Source: Setoptus koraiensis | Lineage: Eukaryota; Animalia; Arthropoda | Direction of reading: 5' to 3' | Length of the DNA: 64,000 nucleotides | Assembly (NCBI GenBank): GCA_048013815.1 | Contig: CM106585.1 | Location: forward strand, 14,012,001 to 14,076,000 | Shown: positions 44,525 to 59,228 of the stretch, one piece after another | How positions within the stretch are numbered: the first letter of the stretch is position 1 | Layout: every line of letters starts with the position of its first letter | Translations under genes and position numbers: made by a program | The notes under the pieces: model-generated | The model's database searches: none | Told to the model about the DNA's origin: nothing | What the model saw: the letters and a program-made list of their open reading frames with translations, nothing else

Positions 44525-45580
44525 ATGAAATTGTATCACAATGAGGTGGAATATACCATGGAAAAAGAACTTTCAGGAAAACAAACTCAACTACAAACAT
44601 TCAAATGTGTGATATTGAAAAAATTACAACCCAAGGACTTCGGAGTAGATAGTTTCGCAGGGCAGATCACATTGAGTGACTCCTGGATGAGACGTATCTA
44701 CAAGAGATCTCGCTACATTGACAGGGAGAAAGAAACAGATGACGGCCAAAATGTTTACTCACCGTCGAAACTTACCCTTCTAAACAACTATATCGAAAAG
44801 AGGAAAATCTCGCCTATGATAGAAAGAGTTCAACGCCCACCCCCAACCCTAAAACCAGAGGTTGCAGACTACACGCTTAACCCAGAGCTATTGAGGAACG
44901 AACTTAAGAATATTAAATACGATTACGATGATCTCCCCAAATTGACCCCAAGTGATTCAGTGAGGAAATGTGTAAAAAAATGCCGGAAGCAAGCGTTTGA
45001 TAAGTCACCACCAAAACTATATCCAGAAACGGACGGATTTGTGGACGATGTTGATATAATTGACTTTGCAGATCCAGATTATGTCCAAAACAAAAATCCC
45101 TCGCCGACTGCTAGTCTACATGCCTCAATTATTCACCACAAGTTGCGTAGGCGTAACCAATTCCCCCCGGACGATCTCCTAAGATGGTTGTCTGAAGATG
45201 GACCACCGACAAAAGCCTTAGATGACTGTAGATTCGTCACTGGTGAAGGTGTACCTAGGCTGGATTTACATGCGATACAAGCCCCTAGTATGATAACAGA
45301 ACTGGCGATAGATTCTATGAATAACCTTAAGCCCGAAGAGGAGGAGAAATTGAAACTTCTCACATCGGACAAAGACTACATGGATAGATTGATGAGGATA
45401 ATTGGTAAAGCCATCAACAAGACCCCCAATGATGAATTTTCGTCTAACGATCTTCCCAATGGTTATCATCAATGCGATGAAGGCCAACATAAGGATCATC
45501 GGAGTGTTAATAGCTCGAGCAACGTCGACAACTCTGAACGCTTTGATGCAAGCACGGACGACACTACTGTTGACCAATAG
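44525..45580 (+). CDS. Hypothetical protein, 351 aa, intronless, not recognised
   Basis: Long ORF in AT-rich DNA with ordinary amino-acid composition, head-to-head with NPL4. No family motif recognised. Confidence 0.7.
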   Translation: MKLYHNEVEYTMEKELSGKQTQLQTFKCVILKKLQPKDFGVDSFAGQITLSDSWMRRIYKRSRYIDREKETDDGQNVYSPSKLTLLNNYIEKRKISPMIERVQRPPPTLKPEVADYTLNPELLRNELKNIKYDYDDLPKLTPSDSVRKCVKKCRKQAFDKSPPKLYPETDGFVDDVDIIDFADPDYVQNKNPSPTASLHASIIHHKLRRRNQFPPDDLLRWLSEDGPPTKALDDCRFVTGEGVPRLDLHAIQAPSMITELAIDSMNNLKPEEEEKLKLLTSDKDYMDRLMRIIGKAINKTPNDEFSSNDLPNGYHQCDEGQHKDHRSVNSSSNVDNSERFDASTDDTTVDQ

Positions 45581-47254: not shown

Positions 47255-48583
47255 TTATAACGATTCAGCCACGAGTTCCTCCGCAGATGCCTTGCTATCG
47301 ACTTCCATCTCATCGCTCTTTTGTGTTTCCACAGGCGGTTGTACAGATTTTATCTCTGTCAGCTTCACAATTGTTGCTTTTATACTGTCTGCCAATGGCC
47401 CGTTGTATGCTTTGTCGGCTGATAAATCTAGTTGAACAAATTGTCTTAGAGTCCCTCCTAGAGAACGTTGGGGATTGACTACTAGACATCCGTTAACTTC
47501 CTTGTGAAAGCACACCAGTCTGCTGGGCGCAATAAGTATGTGAGGACAACGTCCTAGCTTATACGACTTCATCAAAACAGAATAATCCACAGATACATCG
47601 GGTTTTGGGGGGTAGATAGGGTACATGTTAGCCTGATTAAGAATGTGTCTACTTAACAGAACCATCCGGTCATTAGTACATCTGTTTATTGTCACTTCGC
47701 TTGAACTTAAATGAAATAGAACGTCGACGGAAGTGACACTAACAGTTAGGCCGTCGAGGTTTAGATGTGATGGATCTGATATCGGAATTATTTTCAAATT
47801 ACATTTCTTTTTGTCTTTCGTGATTGATTTTATAGATAATTCTGGACACGGATAGATGTTGGCGGATATCATGGATTCGCACATGAGTTCTCTGGGTGAC
47901 GAGACCAGATATAGAGTGCAAGTTAAATCTTTTAGCGCTGTATAAATTTGAGTGACGAACGCATTCAAATCTTCAGTGAATTCTTTTGGTGACTTCAGAA
48001 GTTTCTCTTTGTTCTCTGAGTTGACGAATGGTCCAATGAGAATAGTATGCGAGGGTTCGGCTTTTTTGCATGCTTCCAACAGAGTGCTCAATGATTTATT
48101 ATTGATATCGCCATTTTCGTTGTAGTCGACAAAGGGACCAGAAGCTACAATTATACGAATATTCTGAGTGAGGGTGAATTCGTCATCTGGGAAAGGAGGT
48201 TGAATCGTTTGAGGATCAATCATGTTTCTGACAATCAAATGTTTGCTCCTTTCGTAGCTTGGTCGGCCAGCAAAAGCAATTATTTGACCTGGGAAGAATG
48301 AGAACTCTTGCGAGACTTCGCTTAGATCGACAGTAACTTTTGCGTTATCAGTGAGAGATTGGGAACCTCTGATGGGAAGCTCTTTGATATCCAAAAGGCT
48401 TTGTCCATCGTTCCAAACCATTCCTATGTAGTGGACATCTGTGCCTGATTTCACGCTTTCATCAAAACGATCAAATGCCTTTATTTGAGGGCACGCATCA
48501 AGGTAGCGGTAGGCATGTTCATCGATTAAAGCATCGAAATGACTTTTCACCGATGAGGCATAATTAGTCCTAAACTTAAACAT
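47255..48583 (-). CDS. POLA2: DNA polymerase alpha subunit B (p70/Pol12), OB fold plus phosphoesterase-like core, 442 aa
   Basis: Motifs VDLSEV..FSFFPGQIIAFAG, IIVASGPF, ILIGPFV, LSRHILNQANMYPIYPP, PHILIAPSRL..F and GCLVVNP. Confidence 0.93.
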   Translation of the reverse strand: MFKFRTNYASSVKSHFDALIDEHAYRYLDACPQIKAFDRFDESVKSGTDVHYIGMVWNDGQSLLDIKELPIRGSQSLTDNAKVTVDLSEVSQEFSFFPGQIIAFAGRPSYERSKHLIVRNMIDPQTIQPPFPDDEFTLTQNIRIIVASGPFVDYNENGDINNKSLSTLLEACKKAEPSHTILIGPFVNSENKEKLLKSPKEFTEDLNAFVTQIYTALKDLTCTLYLVSSPRELMCESMISANIYPCPELSIKSITKDKKKCNLKIIPISDPSHLNLDGLTVSVTSVDVLFHLSSSEVTINRCTNDRMVLLSRHILNQANMYPIYPPKPDVSVDYSVLMKSYKLGRCPHILIAPSRLVCFHKEVNGCLVVNPQRSLGGTLRQFVQLDLSADKAYNGPLADSIKATIVKLTEIKSVQPPVETQKSDEMEVDSKASAEELVAESL

Positions 48584-49595
48584 GGTTTCTATATGGTTGG
48601 GGATAATAGTAGGGGAAATTTCGATCCGCTAATGAAATTGTTTTCTCATGGCTCGACACAAAAATTGGAGGCACTTTATTGTTTCAAAAGCAACTGTTGA
48701 ATGCCGCACTTTCTCTTTATCCGAACAGCGCCAAATTTGAAAGAGGAAGGTGCAAAAAACCGTGATTGATCCGCGTGATCTTGGTACCAGATTGAGTCCC
48801 GGATGTTTCACATAATGAATTAACAGGTTGTGCAATCGAACTTCGAAAACAATAGTGAGGTATCTCTTTTCAAATGTAATCTAATGATCATAGTCTTTCT
48901 GATCGATGATACGTTTCCATCGTCAAGATGTTCACGATGATGCAATCAAAATTAAAGATCAAAAGATGAAGACAACCACGGCAATTCATGCTGCCCTGAA
49001 TAGAGAAAAGCCTTCATTGACAAAACATTCGCCATTGTTAATTGTTGAAAGTTCCAGATGTTGCCATGGAACGCACGATTTAACGTGTCACAGATCTAAC
49101 CAGACAAACAAAAGTTATTTCGATTACGTAACAAGTTCGAAAAACGCGCTAAGGTAATGTGCTGAACTTGTACACAAGAGGTCAGCTGATATAGCACTGC
49201 ACCAATAGCTGTCTGCTGTATGTTGTGACTTGGTGCTCAACAGCGAGCGACAGGTAAAATTGAAACCATACTATAAAAAGAACAAAAATAGACAGATAAA
49301 ATAACTTCATTGTCATTAATATTATTCTATGCACCATCATAGATTCTTTAGCAATTATACATGTATAATTGTACACATTCATACATGATGTGAACTAAAC
49401 TCTTTTACAGCACCATCATTTCCAAAAATTAATCAGTCCGTAGATCTTATGTGATACATCATTGATTGTCATATTATTACTATCACCATTATTATTCGTA
49501 AATTCACATTGATATATTCTTCATTCGTTAGGCCCCAGGAATCACTTTTACCAAGCTTCAATCAACGAACTGATCTAGCTCTACATACAACAAAA

Positions 49596-50751
49596 ATGGT
49601 GGGAGACAGACCGCCAGTAACTGCGAATTTAGTTTTGCCAATACTTATCAAGCCAGCCTTGAGGAAGGTGAGTTGGAAAATATTGTTATATATCACAAAC
49701 TATAGAGATTGCGCACCGTCAATGTTGTTTCAGACAATAATCTAGACGATTATGTTCAACTTATTTGCATCATTCAGGTTGAAAAATGTTCTATGCCGGC
49801 TGCATTAAGCCTCAAGATGGCCCTACTAAAGGTAACTTTGATCAGGCAATATTATTAATCAATATTAATTCTGTTGCAGCGATTTCCAAGTTCGTTTCCA
49901 ATAACACCAACATGCAATTCTTTCATTTATTTACAGGCTGAATCATCTCACCCGGGACTGATATTGGAAATTGTAACCATACTAGCTAGAAGAGTGGATC
50001 CTAGTATAAACATGACTGAGTCATTGCTCAGGCTTCAAGGAATAGTTCCTGAATCTGAAGGTACCGTACAAGTTTATTGAAACCTCAAATGTCTTATTTA
50101 TCTTTACACAATTGACTAATCTCAAAAATATATCAAACTGTCATGCCACAGAATATAAATCCCGACGTTCTGAAGAGCTTTATTTAGATCTTAATAGGAA
50201 GTCAAGCACGCTCAAGAAGATACTGAGCAGAGTGCCTGATGAGATCAATGATCGAAAAACTTTCCTAGAAACCATCAAGTAAGATATTACCTTTATATAC
50301 ACAGACTTGTCCCATGAACTAACTAATGTTACTCGACTTTTTCTAACAAACTACTACTCTCTTGTGTGATTTTCACTCTCCTCAAACAGAGAGATTGCCA
50401 GCGCCATTAAAAAACTATTAGATTGTGTCACCGAAATATCAAACCAGACCCAATCTCAAAGTAGCAGGCAGGCACTCGAAGATAGGAAACGTGATTTTAT
50501 CAAATATTCCAAGAAATTCAGTAATACACTGAAAGAATTCTTCAAAGAGGGCCAGTAAGTAAAAAAGAGAGTTAGAAAATAATTTCTTAACCTTCAGTTT
50601 TTCACACTGATTGACACACACAAATTAATTTCATTCTTTGAATTCTAGGGCCCAATCGGTTTTCATCAGTGCGGCTCACTTGGTCAATCAAACTTATGCC
50701 ATCCAGTTAACAGTCAAAAGTCGGTGTGATAATGCAAACACCTCCTCATAA
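49596..50751 (+). CDS. PDCD10: Programmed cell death protein 10 (CCM3); six exons 49596-49667, 49778-49831, 49937-50060, 50152-50278, 50390-50554, 50649-50751
   Basis: Spliced product has [44 protein letters not shown] and DFIKYSKKFSNTLKEFFKEG..SVFISAAHLVNQT. All five introns are GT-AG (91-111 nt) with consistent phases. Confidence 0.96.
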
Positions 50752-51574
50752 ATATGCACGCCTATTGTCTGGATATGATAATTTTTCGAGATTCCAAAGT
50801 GAACACCACATATGCAATGAGACACTCGACCAATACTTGTTCAGGGGGGGGGGGGGTAACTGTCCTGGATCACTCATCCAACCCTATCTTCCGACATCGA
50901 CCCAGCTTCGAAGCGGGAGAAACAGTGCTCCGAGTTATTTCTAAGCAAGACAGTCTGCCCTCAACTCTCTTCTTTCGATGTGCCATACTGAGTGTAATAT
51001 ATCGTAAGTCATGATGCCTGAGACTCTCATATAAATACTCTTGGTAGATGGTTCTCCGGTGACCGGCAAAAAAAAAATGAATTCTTCAGCTGGAATTGTC
51101 GGAATCGATTTCGAACGATTTAGAAAAGTTTTATTTTTGTTACTTACAGCTAAGTTACGTGGTTCGATATACTCTTTGCATTGCTGTGAGGCTATGTTAC
51201 GTCGCTGTTGTTGTTGTTTGAGGCGCCCAACTTGCTCTATTTGATCAAATCGAAACCTAAAAATAGATTTTCTCGTTTTTTTTCTGTCGGGACTTGAAAA
51301 TCAACTGAACGGCCATGTTCATTTGTTTAGTACATGATCTTTATAGATATATTGATTTCGGCTACTTTTTCACAATCTACTGATTCTGAATAATAATACT
51401 TTTCAACAAATTCAATTTACTTATTGGAAAGACCAGCGAAATTCTATCAATAACTCTTATTGCATAGGTTCACCTCAGTCCAGTATATATTGATACTTTT
51501 TGAATTGGAAGATAATCGTGCCCAAGGTCGAAAGTTTGTGAGTTTGATTTATGCTAACAACATGTGGATAAACA

Positions 51575-54500
51575 ATGAGAATTAGTGCGATAATGGCACC
51601 CGAGAGGAGACTAATATCATCACACTCCAGGCAGCACTATCATTCGGTTGAACATTTACTAAGATTGTTCACAGTTAAGAATCTATTGCTACCATTACTT
51701 ATACTACTGTTATTATCACCTGTACTAGCGAAACGATGGCCATCAGTGAAGCAACATTTCTCCAATTTGATGGGCTCGGCCCGGCCTGCCAGGTTTCCTT
51801 TAGCCCATGGTCGCATGCCATACACATCTCCTCTGAACTCCATAGCCCCTTTAGCTCCTCTAGCTCCAACTGCTCTAATTCCACCCGTCAGTCCAATAAG
51901 ATCAACAAGTTCAATGACTCCAATGACTCCAATGACTCCAATGACTCCAATGATTCCAATGGCTCCGACTGCTCCGAGAGCACCGACTGCTCCGAGAGCA
52001 CCGACTGCTCCGATAGCTCCGCTGGCCCCGCTGGCCCCGATGGCCCCGATGGCTCCGATGACGCCTATGGCGCGTAGGTTGAGTTCGGTATCCCCACCAA
52101 GTCCAATGGCCACAACTAGACTAAGGCCCGGACTACGCCGTCAGAATTATCCACAGCGAACATACGGACACAAAATTCCCACTGGTGGTGTCGTGGATCG
52201 AATCCGAAATTTCACAAAAGAAAGAGCACCATTTCAAAATATATCTCGAGTTCACAATGGACTACCGCCAAGAAGTTTGCCTCGTCACGGCAAAGTAGCC
52301 AGGAAGCTGGGTAACTTGGGTTCTTCAATATTGAACAACTTTAAGAATCGCCGTGTGGACACTTCGCCGCGAATAACTCCGAACGCACCAATTATGCAAA
52401 CGACTGTAACAACGGCGAGCCCAGCTTTCAACAAGCCCGCAGAAATGAACTATCCAGCTCTGGGCCACTCGCAATCCTCTTCGTATTCGCATTCGTCCTC
52501 GTCGTTCGTAGAGCACGACCCCTCAAAAGGAGCTCCCAAGTATTATCAAGAGGCTCACACTTTCACAAATAACAATGGTCAAGTTGAGCAACAGCACTAT
52601 CAAAACTATGGTCCTCCTAAAGGAGTGACCCTCGGACTGTCAGCAGGAACAAATGAAGGAATGGCATCCAGGGCTGTGGCATCCGTTCGGCCAATGCGAG
52701 CGGGTAACAACAGAATTCGATCGAGGCCCAACAATATTCAAAGTACAAGAGATATGCCTGCGATGCCAAGGAATGCCAACGCTCGTTATCCCTTGAGCAG
52801 GCAATCGAGCGGTATTCGTCGAGTTTCTCATGGTGTCAATGGTCGGCTGAAATCATTATTGAGGCCCAGTGCAAGTCGGTCAGTTTCATCTAATGCAGGC
52901 ATTGCGCATCAAAGCCGGTTTGGCCCGCCAAGAGGCTCGCCTTATGTAAGGAGGTCACGAGCGATGCCAGGAAATGTTGAGATGAGAGGCAAAACTCCTT
53001 GGCGAGCGGCACTAACTAATGTGGGCCGCAGAATGGGCGATCGCAATCCAATAAAAGCTCGTACAAACATGATAAGAAACAGATTGATGCCTCACAATAG
53101 TCGGCCCACTGTTGCGCGACCTGTGCCGTCGCAACAAGCCAGAACTGCAAAAATGAGACCAATGTCATTGTCTAGCCGTTCGAGAGCTCCAATCAGCAGT
53201 AAACTACCTCTAAACACAAGTTGGTTCAAAGAAAGAATACGCAGACCGATGGCAAGCAGAGTTCGATCGCCTCGTTATCTAGCTCGACAAATGCCAAACA
53301 AACAAAACAATGGTATAGCAAGGAACATTGTCAACAGAAGCCCGCCGAGCCGCTTGCCACTTCCTCGCCGGTCATTGAGCATGTATAAACGAGGCCAATC
53401 AGATTATGGTCGGGCTGCTATGCCACAGCAGCAAGAGAGAACTGCACGGCTACCGCCTCCACGACTAGCCTATCGTGCTAAATCTCTACTCAACCGGCGC
53501 CCCGAACAGAACTCGCTGAGTAGCGTCCCTGTGCGAATACCTAGCTACAAAAGTCGGCTTCCAATGAGAATGCAGAGTTTGCGAAACACCAAGCCCCAGA
53601 ATACATTGAATAGTGAGGCCTTGCCCAATGTGGCCAACAAAAGAAGAATGATGAAAAGTAGTCGCCAGACCCCAATTGTGGCTGGACCGTTGAACCCGGA
53701 GCAATCAACAACAAGTGAATTATCCCCTGATGGCTCAGATTCGCAACAAGAACCAAACACCTCAGCACAGGTCAATGTTATCGATTCTTCGCACAACGAA
53801 GGCCCTGACCACCACGAACATTGGAGCTCAGAGGAACGAATTGTCACGCCAACGGGCCATGAGTCGACATCGTCTAGTTTTACATCGACTCGGATCACTA
53901 GACCGTCAGCACAACCACAATTATCTGCACCGCTTGCCAATGCTGCGGCGCATACTGAAATGCAGCCGTCGCCTCATCGCATCAAATCAGCCCCGGAATT
54001 GATAACGTCAAACCTAGCAGCAAGTGCCGGGGATTCGCGTCAAGACGGCGATAGCTCCAAGGAGGAACAAGTTCCACCAGTGTCCATTGGCAATGCAGGT
54101 GGGGCCCTCGGCAATGATGATTCTGCACCGAACAGCAACAGTGCCGAACAGCCAAAAGCACTTACTGAGGGTCTGAAGGATCTCAAACCCTTGGATTCAA
54201 TTAAGCAACGTCAGCCATCAGTGCCTTCGATGCCCCCTCTGCGAGTGCCCACAGTTCCTGATGTGAGTCAGCTGATCAGGGCACCTTCGACCCAGGGTCA
54301 GAATGAAGAGCTTGCAGAGCAAGAAGAATGGGACGATGATGACGACGACGACGACGAAGATGACGACGATGAAGACGACGACGACGACGACGATGATGAT
54401 GAAGACGACGATGACGACGATGACGATGAAGATGGTGGCGAGAAGGGAAAGTTTGAAGAAAATGCTGAGGACAATGCTAAAAGTAATCATATAATCCCCA

Positions 54501-55024
54501 AAATTCATGGTACCCTCAATAAAGTTCTGCATCATCCCAACATGAAGCATCCTGGTACCAGTACGCAAGTGACACCCAATGTCCTGCCGGAGAATCCGTC
54601 ATTATTGGGGGCCAATGGTAACAAAATTGCAGCTGCTCCCGTGGTACCCAGCAACCCGGTAATGCAAATAGATGGTAATGAGCGGCAGCAAGGTCATGAG
54701 AGAGGGGGCCAACAGAGCGGCAATTCGCTCGTCGGAGGCCCGGTTAATTTCGATAGAGCTGGAGCAAACGAACCACCTGGCGCGAATGCCTTAGATAAAC
54801 TACCAGAGAGTATGCATGCTCAGCAGGTTGCAGCAGAAAGTGATCATCATGACGACCAGGGTGATGGCGACGACAACGAGGACGACGATGATGACGACAA
54901 CGACGACGACAACGACGAGGACTATGACGAACACGATGACAAAGATAATGATGACGACGATGATGATGACGACGACGAAGATGGCAAGACCAATGAGGAG
55001 GACGGGGATAAAATAAATGTCTGA
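51575..55024 (+). CDS. Large low-complexity, probably secreted protein (1149 aa): Pro-X-X repeats, Arg-rich basic half, Asp-rich acidic C-terminus
   Basis: Uninterrupted 3.45-kb ORF. Hydrophobic LLLPLLILLLLSPVLA|KR, (MTP)n/(APX)n repeats and two poly-Asp tracts at about 54332-54433 and 54851-54982. Confidence 0.85.
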   Translation: MRISAIMAPERRLISSHSRQHYHSVEHLLRLFTVKNLLLPLLILLLLSPVLAKRWPSVKQHFSNLMGSARPARFPLAHGRMPYTSPLNSIAPLAPLAPTALIPPVSPIRSTSSMTPMTPMTPMTPMIPMAPTAPRAPTAPRAPTAPIAPLAPLAPMAPMAPMTPMARRLSSVSPPSPMATTRLRPGLRRQNYPQRTYGHKIPTGGVVDRIRNFTKERAPFQNISRVHNGLPPRSLPRHGKVARKLGNLGSSILNNFKNRRVDTSPRITPNAPIMQTTVTTASPAFNKPAEMNYPALGHSQSSSYSHSSSSFVEHDPSKGAPKYYQEAHTFTNNNGQVEQQHYQNYGPPKGVTLGLSAGTNEGMASRAVASVRPMRAGNNRIRSRPNNIQSTRDMPAMPRNANARYPLSRQSSGIRRVSHGVNGRLKSLLRPSASRSVSSNAGIAHQSRFGPPRGSPYVRRSRAMPGNVEMRGKTPWRAALTNVGRRMGDRNPIKARTNMIRNRLMPHNSRPTVARPVPSQQARTAKMRPMSLSSRSRAPISSKLPLNTSWFKERIRRPMASRVRSPRYLARQMPNKQNNGIARNIVNRSPPSRLPLPRRSLSMYKRGQSDYGRAAMPQQQERTARLPPPRLAYRAKSLLNRRPEQNSLSSVPVRIPSYKSRLPMRMQSLRNTKPQNTLNSEALPNVANKRRMMKSSRQTPIVAGPLNPEQSTTSELSPDGSDSQQEPNTSAQVNVIDSSHNEGPDHHEHWSSEERIVTPTGHESTSSSFTSTRITRPSAQPQLSAPLANAAAHTEMQPSPHRIKSAPELITSNLAASAGDSRQDGDSSKEEQVPPVSIGNAGGALGNDDSAPNSNSAEQPKALTEGLKDLKPLDSIKQRQPSVPSMPPLRVPTVPDVSQLIRAPSTQGQNEELAEQEEWDDDDDDDDEDDDDEDDDDDDDDDEDDDDDDDDEDGGEKGKFEENAEDNAKSNHIIPKIHGTLNKVLHHPNMKHPGTSTQVTPNVLPENPSLLGANGNKIAAAPVVPSNPVMQIDGNERQQGHERGGQQSGNSLVGGPVNFDRAGANEPPGANALDKLPESMHAQQVAAESDHHDDQGDGDDNEDDDDDDNDDDNDEDYDEHDDKDNDDDDDDDDDEDGKTNEEDGDKINV

Positions 55025-57212
55025 AGTCGATCGTAATCAGCAAGCAAACATTGGATTATACGATTGAAAATTTTTATTTAAAATCACTCAAGTTGGAAAC
55101 TTTTAACAAGTGTATATGATGTGCAATGGACTGTGTTAGACCGACTTCCGATCGAGGCTCATAATAAACGTATTAATTATTAGGATTTTCGACGACTAAT
55201 TGGGCTCGCTTGCTAGCGCGGGCCAGCCTTGTGAGCCGGTTATAGTTGTAACAAGGCACTCTACTAGGGGCCCCTCGATAATCCAGTGTTGAAGAACTTG
55301 TTGTCGAGACAGGATTATAGTCTGTTTATCGCGATGACAAAAATGTTTGCACATGTGAAATTTATCTGTACCTTCACCGAACACACACTGTATTAATAAA
55401 GATTGCAGCTAATTATTTGTCATTCGTTGCAAAAAACAATAGTCACATGCCCGCTAATGAAATAATAATCGATGAGATTGCGACCGGAATAACCTGCAAT
55501 CAATTTGGACGCCATATAGTTGGACATAAACCTACTTTCGAACAATAGAAATTAGACTCTAGTCTAGAGACTCTAATCATTAGAGATTTATTGTGTAGAT
55601 GCGACAGACAGCAAGTTTTGTTGCGATCTGGATTTGACTAAATCCAACTGATCCCAACTGATGTTCGACCATCAATTATAAGGCAATTATTGTAACACTG
55701 ACACATCTGATCGCATTTTCAATATTCGGATTCCAGTTTCTCGATTAAGGGAGCGATAGTATTTAAACTAACTGTTCTACTCTCTGGTACCATTAGTCAC
55801 TAACTGACCTAAGCAACAAGTGTGTTCAATTTTGAAGATACAAGTGTTTGTCATTTACTGAAAGATATAACTCGCAAGGCGCAAAACCATCCAGGAGGTG
55901 GAGGAAGTACAGGAATGGTATCTGGTGCAGGAACTGAGAGACCCCAACCAAGTGTAGCACCCCGTCTCTAATCTCTCAGCGGTGGACCAATGGTAGGTAA
56001 TTCCAGGCCATCTGATTGATGCATTGTTTGCTGCAGTGAAAAGAGATCTTCAAAACGGAGCAAACATCAGATATTAATGATGAAGCCAGCCTTCAGATTG
56101 GCCCGGTGAATACGAAACAAACGACACAACTATGTTCTAGCAGAATCAAAATGTAAAATTGACAATGAACGATGGCGAGCTTGAGATCAAATTATATGTT
56201 GTTGAAAACGAATCATAAAATGAAAATCTTGCTTCCACAGTGTATTCTCGATTGTTAACTGCTGGCATATGATGGGCCCTATGTAGATTGAGTGTGGTGC
56301 TTTAGTTTATCGTTGAAGAATATTTGTTTCTAATTTCTAAGTTTTTTTTTGTCTATTTTTCTTTCCGTTCACTGGTCTCGCCTTCTCGTTCGTTTACCTG
56401 ATAAGCTCCCTATGCTGCAGCGCTGCAACGGATAGTCGGTTGCAAACGGGCTCTATACGGATAAACCGCTGAACATGATGAATTTCCAACACAAATCCCT
56501 AACACACAATCAGCAACTTGCTGTGATCGATCTCAGGCCAACTGAGTCATCGGCGATGAATGAGACAATCTCAGACAGAGAGGTCTAGAGAAAGATCGAG
56601 AAACCAGAAGGAAATACAACCCGACGATCTAGGGATCGACAGTCTTTCTTTGGCCGACCGACCGACCTTTGGAGGAGTCTTGTTTATGGTATAGTCCAAT
56701 CTGACTCAGTTTTAAATTGAGTCTAAGAGAGTAATTGTCACACATCATTATAAAGTATATAATTAAACACATTGATATTCATATTCATTAAAGTATAAAG
56801 CGAAAGTATTTCAAAACAAACCAATATTGTATAACAAACCAATACTCACGAGTAATAGTATGTTATAAGCTCCAATCAAAGCAATTCTAGTTGTAGTTAT
56901 CGTATATGTTTTCTCGGTCCTATACCAAGCTGATGGGGACCCCAGCAATACGATAAGAAAGCTCATAAACAGTGTTATAGCATCACTCTACGAGTAACCA
57001 ACGCTTACACTGTAGGTATTCTATCATGCTTTATGATATATACCGTGCTATATGGATCTTTGAATACATCTCCTACTCTGGTCGATTGATGGAAAACTCT
57101 ATGTTGGGTTAATACCAGGGTTATATCATCGATATCGTTATCAGGTATTAGTCTAGCTGCTTGTGAATATATTCGGGACACGTCATCATACGGTTTTGAA
57201 TATCCTGCAACC

Positions 57213-57387
57213 CGATGAATTATCGTTGGCTGGCTGCTTCTTATCTAACTGGCTCATCTGAATTTTTGTCGCCTTTACATTGTGTGCAAACTTTATTTGA
57301 TTAAACAACTACCCATACATCACATTGACGTTTTGTGTTCTCGAATGGTCTCGAACTGACTGGACAACACTGCACAATGGCTCGTAT
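57213..57387. repeat. 175-bp dispersed direct repeat, copy 1
   Basis: cgatgaattatcgttggc...caatggctcgtat is nearly identical to 59053-59228, with a few substitutions and one small indel. Confidence 0.95.
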
Positions 57388-57472
57388 AGCTAGCGTCAGG
57401 ATGCGCGACCGCACTCACACGACCACTCCCAAGAAGACTCACCGCAAGACGCAGCAATAGCAAGACTTTCAT
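57320..57472 (-). CDS. Possible small ORF (50 aa) with hydrophobic N-terminus MKVLLLLRLAVSLLG
   Basis: Signal-like start. It contains GTGAGT donor-like sites and its 3' part lies within the duplicated segment, so coding status is doubtful. Confidence 0.25.
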   Translation of the reverse strand: MKVLLLLRLAVSLLGSGRVSAVAHPDASYTSHCAVLSSQFETIREHKTSM

Positions 57473-57697
57473 TATATGACTCGTTTTCTTACTCTTTATT
57501 GACAATTCAACAACCACTTAACACAATCGAATTTGCCTCCGGTAGCCAACTCGCTCTCATTTATTTCCGATCTTCCATTCTGATTCTCTTAAACATTGTT
57601 GATTTGTTTGTTTCACAATGACCAGGCCAAATATAATTGTGGTTCCATCATACAGATTTTTTACGGCTGATAAGAACCATCTCGGTTGAATGATGAA

Positions 57698-57886
57698 TCA
57701 TTTGCGTCCCGATGCTAATTCTTCTACGCCAGCTCCATTCGCTCCATCCATAAGAGTGTCGAGAAGATTTTGAAAATTGACTAACTGATCCTCACTCTGC
57801 CCGAAGCATGGTTGTATTATGCCCGGTATTGCTACCATGAGCAAAGCGAACAGGCAAAGGCACAAAACAAAAGAATTATTCATCAT
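57698..57886 (-). CDS. Small putative secreted peptide (62 aa)
   Basis: MMNNSFVLCLCLFALLMVAIPGIIQPCFG is signal-like, followed by an acidic segment ending SGRK*. A ctaacAG acceptor sits just upstream of the ATG and AATAAA is downstream. Confidence 0.55.
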   Translation of the reverse strand: MMNNSFVLCLCLFALLMVAIPGIIQPCFGQSEDQLVNFQNLLDTLMDGANGAGVEELASGRK

Positions 57887-59052
57887 GTTCTGTTAGTTGG
57901 GTAGTTTTGCGTCTTGCGAGCTATATTATTCAAAAAATGGCAACTGTTTATTTATTTGAAACTGATTACACTTGTTCTGTAAGTTATTGACTTGTGATGT
58001 CAGAGAGTGAAACAGAGAGTTTAAATACTATCTCCCTCAATCGAGAAATTGGAATACAAATAGTGAAAATGCGATGAGATGTGTCACACTGATTGACTTA
58101 CAATTACATGCCATCGCTAGCCGGCGCATTTGTCGGGATTGAGTCAAATCTCGATCTCAGCGAAACCTGAGCACGCAATAAATCTCTAATCCCCATTTCT
58201 AGTGTTCGAAAATGGCTTTGTGTCCAATTATATGGCGCACAGATTAAAGATTGCAGGTTTCACTGGTCGCAATCTAATAGATTATTAATTCATTAGCGAT
58301 CATGTGACTATTGTTTTTTGCAACGAGTGCTGCACTCGGCTGAAGCATGAATGACACGACGAAGCTCATGTAATTGCATTCGGGCCGGCGGTGCACACTC
58401 AAATAAATGACAGAATCTGGTGGGAGCTGGCCGTTGTCAAAGCCTCATTCCGATGGCAGGATCCGGTTTGGATTTGCTTACCATACTTTAATGGAGAATA
58501 AATAAACACATCTAGGCGTCCTAGCATGCATGAAGAAAAAAATTGTGAAGGAATCGTTACTTGTCATCGGAAACAAACATTAACAATTTATTGCCCTACG
58601 CACTGATTATCCACAGAAAATTCCAGCTCACTTTCAACTCCAGACCAAGAGTGGAAAAGAGCACTAAACAGTGAGATTAATCAATTAATGATTTCCCATT
58701 TATTGCTATGGCATGCTCCAAACAAGCGCTCACCAACCGTGTGAGCCGGGTATAGTTGTAGCTCGACACTATACTATACGATAATCGACTGTCTGAGGAT
58801 TTGTCGTCGCCATTGTCCAAAAATCATTATTGGCGTTATTTTGCGCGTTAACGGTTATTAATTGTAGCGCGACAAGTGTAGTCGCAATCGCAGAAGCCAT
58901 CATTTGTTTGGTGGCTCATTCCTGTCTGGCCCCATTCTCATGCTCGTTGGAACTTATCACCTATCAGCATTTATGACATCCATGGAGCAGTGTTAGTTAT
59001 GGTGCAGAGTGGAGTGTTCACTAATGGTTCACGGCCGCAAGTGTCAACTGGA

Positions 59053-59228
59053 CGATGAATTATCGTTGGCTGGCTGCCTCTTATCTAACTGGCTTATCTA
59101 AATTTTTGTCGCCTTTCATATTGTGTGCAAACTTTATTTGATTAAACAACTACCCATACATCACATTGACGTTTTGTGTTCTCGAATGGTCTCGAACTGA
59201 CTGGACAACACTGCACAATGGCTCGTAT
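59053..59228. repeat. 175-bp dispersed direct repeat, copy 2
   Basis: Same sequence and orientation as 57213-57387, about 1.84 kb downstream. Confidence 0.95.

Follow-up and report, generated by a model that had tools for sequence, protein, structure and literature searches.

An intronless, apparently orphan mite gene for a predicted disordered block polyampholyte with balanced charge and a signal-like N-terminus

What kind of protein is specified by a 3.4-kb open reading frame (ORF) in which no domain can be recognized, and where in the cell would such a protein go? The question is raised by a locus of the mite Setoptus koraiensis that lies in a 64,000-nt stretch of contig CM106585.1 (assembly GCA_048013815.1, positions 14,012,001 to 14,076,000 of the forward strand), hereafter the window. 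A first-pass annotation, made from the letters alone, had reported here an intronless 1149-aa ORF and described its product as a secreted-looking orphan with segregated charge. The ORF is exactly as reported: a complete single exon of 1149 codons plus a TGA stop at 51575..55024 on the + strand, with 0 in-frame stops. All features of the ORF given below are on the same strand.

The ORF is a genuine protein-coding gene present in a single copy, as indicated by its stop-free frame, codon score, base composition, flanking signals, intronless housekeeping neighbours and copy number. The five alternative frames contain 38-76 stops, and a codon-usage model trained on the neighbouring genes gave frame 0 the best log-odds over the whole ORF and in each non-repetitive segment tested. 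GC content at third codon positions (GC3) is 0.44, against 0.43 for RAD51 and 0.43 for unk351, a 351-aa gene of the same window. An in-frame TAA is located two codons upstream of the ATG, and an AATAAA-type polyadenylation hexamer, identified by consensus match only, follows about 140 nt past the stop (55161..55170), with a second AATAAA hexamer near 55395. Searches of the mite's own genome with both protein and DNA queries found the gene once and no paralog. Separately, a short upstream ORF of 7 codons (51562-51585; ATG, six codons, then TAG) runs in a different frame across the main start codon; it would be relevant only if the transcript begins upstream of it.

These data also bear on the alternative that the ORF is non-functional or very young, being kept open by low-complexity expansions or recently arisen, and makes no working protein. 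Consistent with this idea, no homolog was found anywhere, including in a close relative described below; the codon log-odds is 0.02 bits per codon, below the 0.17-0.18 of RAD51 and unk351; 3-4 kb of gene-free AT-rich DNA lies on both sides; and tandem-repeat DNA accounts for about 15% of the ORF. However, the non-repetitive residues 170-905 comprise >730 codons without a stop, whereas the other frames have one stop per 15-30 codons, an outcome with a chance probability of about e^-35. The alternative is very improbable for this reason, and the top score of frame 0 in all segments tested argues in the same direction. An accidentally open frame of 3.4 kb would also be unlikely in a streamlined genome of 48.8 Mb.

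The encoded protein is strongly segregated in charge. Residues 53-700 (51731..53674) form a polycationic block composed of 13% Arg, 13% Pro, 12% Ser and 5% Met; with 85 Arg, 24 Lys and only 17 Asp/Glu, this block carries a net charge of +92. It is followed by a Ser/Pro/Glu/Gln-rich spacer that is mildly acidic (residues 701-905, 53675..54289, net -12) and by two acidic tracts. The first tract (residues 915-954, 54317..54436) contains an unbroken run of 34 Asp/Glu at residues 920-953 and is detected by Tandem Repeats Finder (TRF) with 83-86% matches at period 3/30. The second, rich in Asp, Glu and Asn (residues 1097-1137, 54863..54985), lies near the C-terminus. Between the two is a near-neutral linker of about 130 residues (residues 958-1088, 54446..54838, net -3) that has no database match in phmmer searches and a predicted local distance difference test score (pLDDT) of about 30. 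The acidic tracts are not a fresh product of replication slippage, since they are encoded by mixed GAC, GAT, GAA and GAG codons. The acidic half as a whole (residues 701-1149) has a net charge of -90, nearly equal and opposite to the basic block, leaving +2 overall for the putative mature chain. The sequence charge decoration is -85, compared with -2.2 +/- 1.3 in 200 shuffled sequences, a difference of >60 standard deviations. The block-wise charge segregation, the Arg-rich and acid-poor stretch, the spacer and the two poly-Asp/Glu tracts proposed by the first-pass annotation are thus all borne out.

The basic block includes tripeptide repeats, (MTP)n and (APX)n, at residues 113-166 (51911..52072), which that annotation had also noted. 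At the DNA level they form a coding minisatellite whose periods are 9 and 18 bp, resolved by TRF into arrays at 51912-51966, 51965-52021 and 52010-52071 (72-94% matches). Two other 9-bp-period arrays occur elsewhere in the genome (L002:874-1830 at C2:16.14 Mb and L005:1480-2175 at C1:17.11 Mb), embedded in GC-rich DNA, where long open frames run through them and would translate them as (PVA)n or (VPx)n; both came up in the own-genome searches and were rejected as paralogs, being further tandem arrays. Pro-containing 9-bp minisatellites seem recurrent in this genome. An arthropod cuticular protein with AAP(A/V)-type repeats was also considered and rejected, as no R&R consensus (Chitin_bind_4) or other cuticle domain was found by Pfam at E up to 1 and the AP-X repeats belong to the 9-bp minisatellite. 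Beyond the arrays, the basic block has no internal repeat: self-BLAST returned only the self match, and none was found in residues 170-905.

The product is predicted to be an intrinsically disordered, cysteine-free block polyampholyte. A single-sequence AlphaFold2 model, of a kind that under-predicts folds, had a mean pLDDT of 33 (about 30 for residues 53-700), with helices only at residues 19-67 and, weakly, 241-257. Pfam at E up to 1 returned only sub-threshold matches, all on the poly-Asp tract at residues 907-968. The matching families were Nop14 and DNA_pol_phi, which scored 16.1 and 17.0 bits against gathering cut-offs of 34.9 and 27.6, respectively. Membership in either family was rejected because the scores are under the cut-offs, involve the poly-Asp run only and are unaccompanied by the families' folded regions. 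The claim that no folded domain is present is in agreement with both analyses. The protein has 0 Cys, 18 Tyr (1.6%), 64 Gly (5.6%) and only 6 S-x-D/E sites.

Where such a chain would go depends on its N-terminus. The first 36 residues (51575..51682) are rich in Arg, Ser and His with a net charge of +4 and include a second Met at residue 7. They are followed at residues 37-52 (51683..51730) by an 11-residue Leu-rich hydrophobic core (h-region, residues 37-47) and a c-region, SPVLA, ending at a putative signal-peptidase site, A52|K53. The best 19-residue Kyte-Doolittle window reaches 2.17 at residue 34, and residues 28-52 are the sole segment of transmembrane grade in the protein. In the c-region, Ala at -1, Val at -3 and Pro at -4 conform, as read from the sequence, to the -3/-1 rule; AlphaFold2 places here a helix (residues 35-54) whose pLDDT of about 66 is not surpassed elsewhere in the model. 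Since there is no Met between residues 7 and 66, the hydrophobic segment would be part of any plausible product, whether translation starts at M1 or M7. Classical signal peptides have an n-region under about 10 residues and total about 15-30 residues. Here the n-region is 36 residues from M1 or 30 from M7 and the putative signal totals 52, whereas the signal of MTP, an endoplasmic reticulum (ER) protein whose gene also lies in the window, is of ordinary length at about 25 residues. Inspection of the C-terminus found no KDEL/HDEL motif and no hydrophobic segment. The 'secreted-looking' label is no more than plausible: the hydrophobic stretch ending VLA|KR is present with a canonical h-region and c-region, but a textbook signal peptide would have neither so long an n-region nor Lys-Arg immediately past its cleavage site. 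We consider it probable that the N-terminal segment engages the membrane for ER targeting; cleavage as a signal peptide is suggested somewhat more weakly, and secretion is plausible.

Tentatively, we read the locus as a lineage-restricted gene for an ER-directed, charge-neutralised, secreted block polyampholyte. In the mechanism we favour, the single N-terminal Leu-rich segment would most likely direct the nascent chain to the ER, probably acting as a long signal peptide that is cleaved after SPVLA at residue 52. The poly-Asp half could then mask or complex the polycationic half, either intramolecularly or between molecules, so that a highly basic polypeptide could be synthesized, densely packed and exported without sticking to cellular polyanions. 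Unmasking might follow from an ionic (salt or pH) change, from Ca2+ binding to the Asp tracts, or from cleavage at the basic/acidic boundary, where KRR (residues 689-691, 53639..53647), the only tribasic cluster, is a candidate convertase site. The freed cationic block might bind an anionic target or condense into a material. A KRR at the boundary is not surprising in a block with 13% Arg, and it is one of 14 dibasic sites distributed through that block. Candidate roles include a salivary or accessory gland secretion, an egg or spermatophore material, and an effector.

Several points weigh against this reading. The 36-residue n-region is atypical next to the short canonical signal of MTP. K53 and R54 directly follow the putative cleavage site, and the mature chain would start out strongly basic; this might instead point to a signal anchor, or to an N-out/C-in orientation with most of the protein in the cytosol, as might the long n-region. 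Statistically, long Asp/Glu tracts with adjacent basic blocks are a mark of proteins of the nucleus and nucleolus, and the only Pfam shadows, Nop14 and DNA_pol_phi, are nucleolar. The disorder was predicted from a single sequence. Finally, the near-exact charge balance could be a coincidence; if signs were simply assigned at random, we estimate the chance of it at roughly 1 in 10.

A serious alternative is a membrane-anchored or nuclear/nucleolar disordered scaffold, in which the hydrophobic helix is an uncleaved anchor or goes unused and the charged blocks face the cytosol or nucleoplasm, where, like their counterparts in nucleolar or chromatin-associated scaffolds, they would bind RNA or chromatin or join condensates. 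The long positive n-region with KR directly after the h-region is in line with such a scaffold, as are the single continuous 20-residue helix in AlphaFold2 (residues 35-54), the nucleolar identity of the sub-threshold Pfam matches, the many phmmer poly-Asp matches of this compositional type, and the general enrichment of Arg-rich disorder and Asp/Glu tracts in nuclear proteins. However, the Pfam matches score just 16-17 bits, short of the gathering thresholds (27.6 and 34.9), and cover the poly-Asp run only, and no RRM, PWI or other nuclear domain was detected by Pfam. RS and SR dipeptides show no excess in residues 170-700, where 22 were counted and 18.3 expected, on which ground, together with the missing domains, an SR-related or SRRM-type protein was rejected. 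The 11-residue h-region, the Pro/Ser break and the small residues at -1 and -3 resemble a cleavable signal rather than a 20-residue anchor, and an N-terminal segment of transmembrane grade would be unusual in a soluble nuclear protein. On balance we regard the scaffold as somewhat unlikely.

Within the secretory reading, the first-pass annotation had gone further and proposed a silk, cement or egg-glue component, or else a salivary effector; the protein would self-coacervate, and multibasic sites might divide it into one cationic and one anionic partner. These roles, taken here to include spermatophore glue, are a sub-case and a speculation, and we hold them to be quite unlikely. The block polyampholyte layout with its exact charge balance, the candidate KRR at the block boundary and the signal-like N-terminus all suit them. 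So does the missing ortholog signal in a close relative, as with fast-turnover effectors and reproductive proteins; effectors are species-specific (PMC7738191), and sandcastle-worm cement offers a coacervate precedent (PMC11277488). Against these roles, the hallmarks of bioadhesives are absent, as seen from the low Tyr and Gly contents and the scarcity of S-x-D/E sites given above, and there are no fibroin-like repeats in a sequence that lacks internal repeats from residue 170 to 905. The gene has no second copy, unlike effector and glue genes, which often form families, and convertases acting at the 14 scattered dibasic sites would shred the basic block instead of splitting the protein cleanly. 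In a bolder version, polycation and polyanion would be fused in one self-neutralising secreted chain, found in a single eriophyoid lineage only and serving either as a coacervating extracellular material (egg or spermatophore glue) or as a host-directed effector with Ca2+-chelating Asp tracts and an Arg block that binds plant polyanions. The gene would have arisen, or changed past recognition, after this lineage parted from a relative that differs at only about 35% of silent sites. We judge this version decidedly improbable.

How restricted the gene is was assessed by broad database searches, calibrated with its neighbours. Residues 170-900 retrieved nothing when 5.8 bn proteins were searched by word index, an exact-sequence look-up found neither the ORF nor three neighbouring window proteins in the protein collection, the ESM Atlas gave no usable match for the whole protein or residues 180-700, and no relative of residues 170-918 was seen among JGI metagenome contigs. 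phmmer against 1.84 bn representatives gave 152 matches at E <=1e-3 (best 1.7e-9), every one of which falls on residues 85-190 or 885-1010, that is, on the AP/MP repeats or the poly-Asp run; all nine that were inspected are unrelated low-complexity repeat proteins. For calibration, the neighbouring genes identified a close relative in the Logan assembly SRR33593474, with 98% identity for NPL4, 69% for unk351 (66% by BLASTP), 98% for RAD51 and 81% for DNA polymerase alpha subunit B (POLA2), and the POLA2 search additionally recovered about 15 short-form eriophyoid-like proteins at 32-40% identity. Two contigs of SRR33593474 (L009 and L011) retain the NPL4-unk351 and POLA2-RAD51 adjacencies. Identity with the window at four-fold degenerate third positions is 0.64-0.78, and 200 bp upstream of POLA2 can be aligned (score 52 versus 13 +/- 1.7 in shuffles), showing that silent sites are a long way from saturation; phmmer should therefore have picked up even an ortholog under neutral drift, provided that it had been assembled and called.

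No fragment of the 1149-aa protein was found in the SRR33593474 assembly, in which both contigs end short of the gene position. As the gene holds tandem arrays and both recovered contigs stop before it, it is plausible that a short-contig assembly missed it; unusually fast evolution and a lineage-specific gene are possible alternatives. The orphan status claimed at first pass is thus supported by these sequence comparisons as far as public data allow, not proven. Besides these data, a distant eriophyoid-like metagenome scaffold (ENA ERZ28596442 scaffold_382; L010) carries a 1470-aa gene (L010:1914-6326, - strand) in RAD51's place beside POLA2. Its protein has no Pfam domain, is mostly low-complexity and contains Cys/His zinc-finger-like motifs and an acidic tail; considered as a diverged ortholog, it proved unrelated (best BLASTP E = 4.4).

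The host genome provides the context for this gene. The assembly comprises 48.76 Mb in 2 contigs. A genome <50 Mb on two chromosomes with mass intron loss is the signature of eriophyoid mites (PMC11879100, PMC7738191), and 47 Mb and two chromosomes have been reported for Setoptus koraiensis (PMC11920263). The host is accordingly an eriophyoid-type mite and a plant feeder, a plant-feeding mite having been surmised at first pass. Neighbouring genes encoding the MTP large subunit, NPL4, unk351, RAD51 and POLA2 are each one open frame. unk351 (44525-45580, +), an intronless ORF between NPL4 and RAD51 without a Pfam domain, is a second lineage-restricted gene of the window: exactly one relative can be detected in the 5.8 bn proteins, the SRR33593474 protein mentioned above, which occupies the syntenic position. 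POLA2 (47255-48583, - strand) is a short form of 442 aa. The roughly 15 eriophyoid-like POLA2 proteins from Logan and ENA (P0151-P0165) are likewise short (379-452 aa), and all lack the N-terminal PF08418 domain that is present in the roughly 600-aa POLA2 of other arthropods, which fits the pattern of domain loss.

The 1149-codon gene is flanked by AT-rich DNA of 3 kb (48584-51574) and 4 kb (55025-59100), in which no ORF above about 90 aa was found and scans of the window gave no Rfam or tRNA match. These flanks are long against the tiny intergenic regions described for this type of genome (PMC11879100). At the other end of the window, composition changes sharply: positions 1-28000 have a GC content mostly of 0.55-0.61 (0.49-0.54 in four 2-kb bins) versus 0.37-0.43 from 30 kb to 52 kb. 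This GC-rich block has many short overlapping ORFs on both strands, with a Pfam domain in none of the nine tested; a GC-rich isochore, intron-rich genes and repeats are candidates for its nature.

Eriophyoid genomes are extremely streamlined, having lost introns, domains and whole genes. A lineage-specific purpose for the gene is likely, because such a genome keeps open 3.4 kb of all-disorder, charge-balanced coding sequence without a recognizable counterpart in a close relative. Two points are noteworthy: the charges of the two halves, +92 and -90, balance, and no ortholog was found in the close relative. If secreted, the protein would be a natural polycation-polyanion fusion in one chain, of relevance to protein phase separation and bio-adhesives, and a candidate molecule of the poorly understood mite-plant interface. 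If nuclear or membrane-bound, it would be an ordinary low-complexity scaffold of little wider interest. Lineage-specific disordered proteins are common, so the interest is limited.

The protein can be compared with several known systems. Nop14 and DNA polymerase phi/MYBBP1A similarly have long acidic tracts next to basic disordered regions, but their folded regions are absent from the mite protein, which in turn has the N-terminal segment of transmembrane grade. Granins, calsequestrin (in its tail) and mollusc Aspein have poly-Asp/Glu runs as well; these are secretory or luminal proteins, acidic and Ca2+-binding. They share with the mite protein a signal or signal-like sequence, disordered acidic tracts and dibasic sites; unlike them, it has an equally large polycationic half and no family domain by Pfam, whereas they are acidic overall.

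A parallel in charge logic is the charge balance hypothesis, in which anionic propieces offset cationic alpha-defensins and cathelicidins (PMC4571063). In those precursors too, an anionic segment offsets a cationic segment of the same chain, the N-terminus is signal-like and a basic cluster marks the junction, where the mite protein has the candidate KRR, one of its 14 dibasic sites. The mite protein differs in being 10-20 times larger, in lacking Cys and a fold, in the reversed order with the cationic part first, and in showing no sequence similarity to them. In sandcastle-worm cement, the oppositely charged proteins Pc1-Pc5 and Pc3A/B are balanced in secretory granules (PMC11277488). These are likewise disordered low-complexity polyelectrolytes of opposite charge, secretion being only putative for the mite protein. 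Measured against coacervate adhesives based on 3,4-dihydroxyphenylalanine (DOPA), as in sandcastle worm and mussel, the protein has the oppositely charged blocks but neither Tyr/Gly-rich repeats nor dense runs of phosphorylatable Ser. We do not claim membership in the defensin/cathelicidin-precursor or cement families, as there is no homology, cysteine framework, DOPA or phosphoserine chemistry. The cement relies on phosphoserine charge with abundant DOPA/Tyr and Gly, whereas the mite protein uses encoded Asp/Glu and is low in Tyr; and where the cement keeps polycation and polyanion on separate proteins, the mite gene joins both blocks in one chain.

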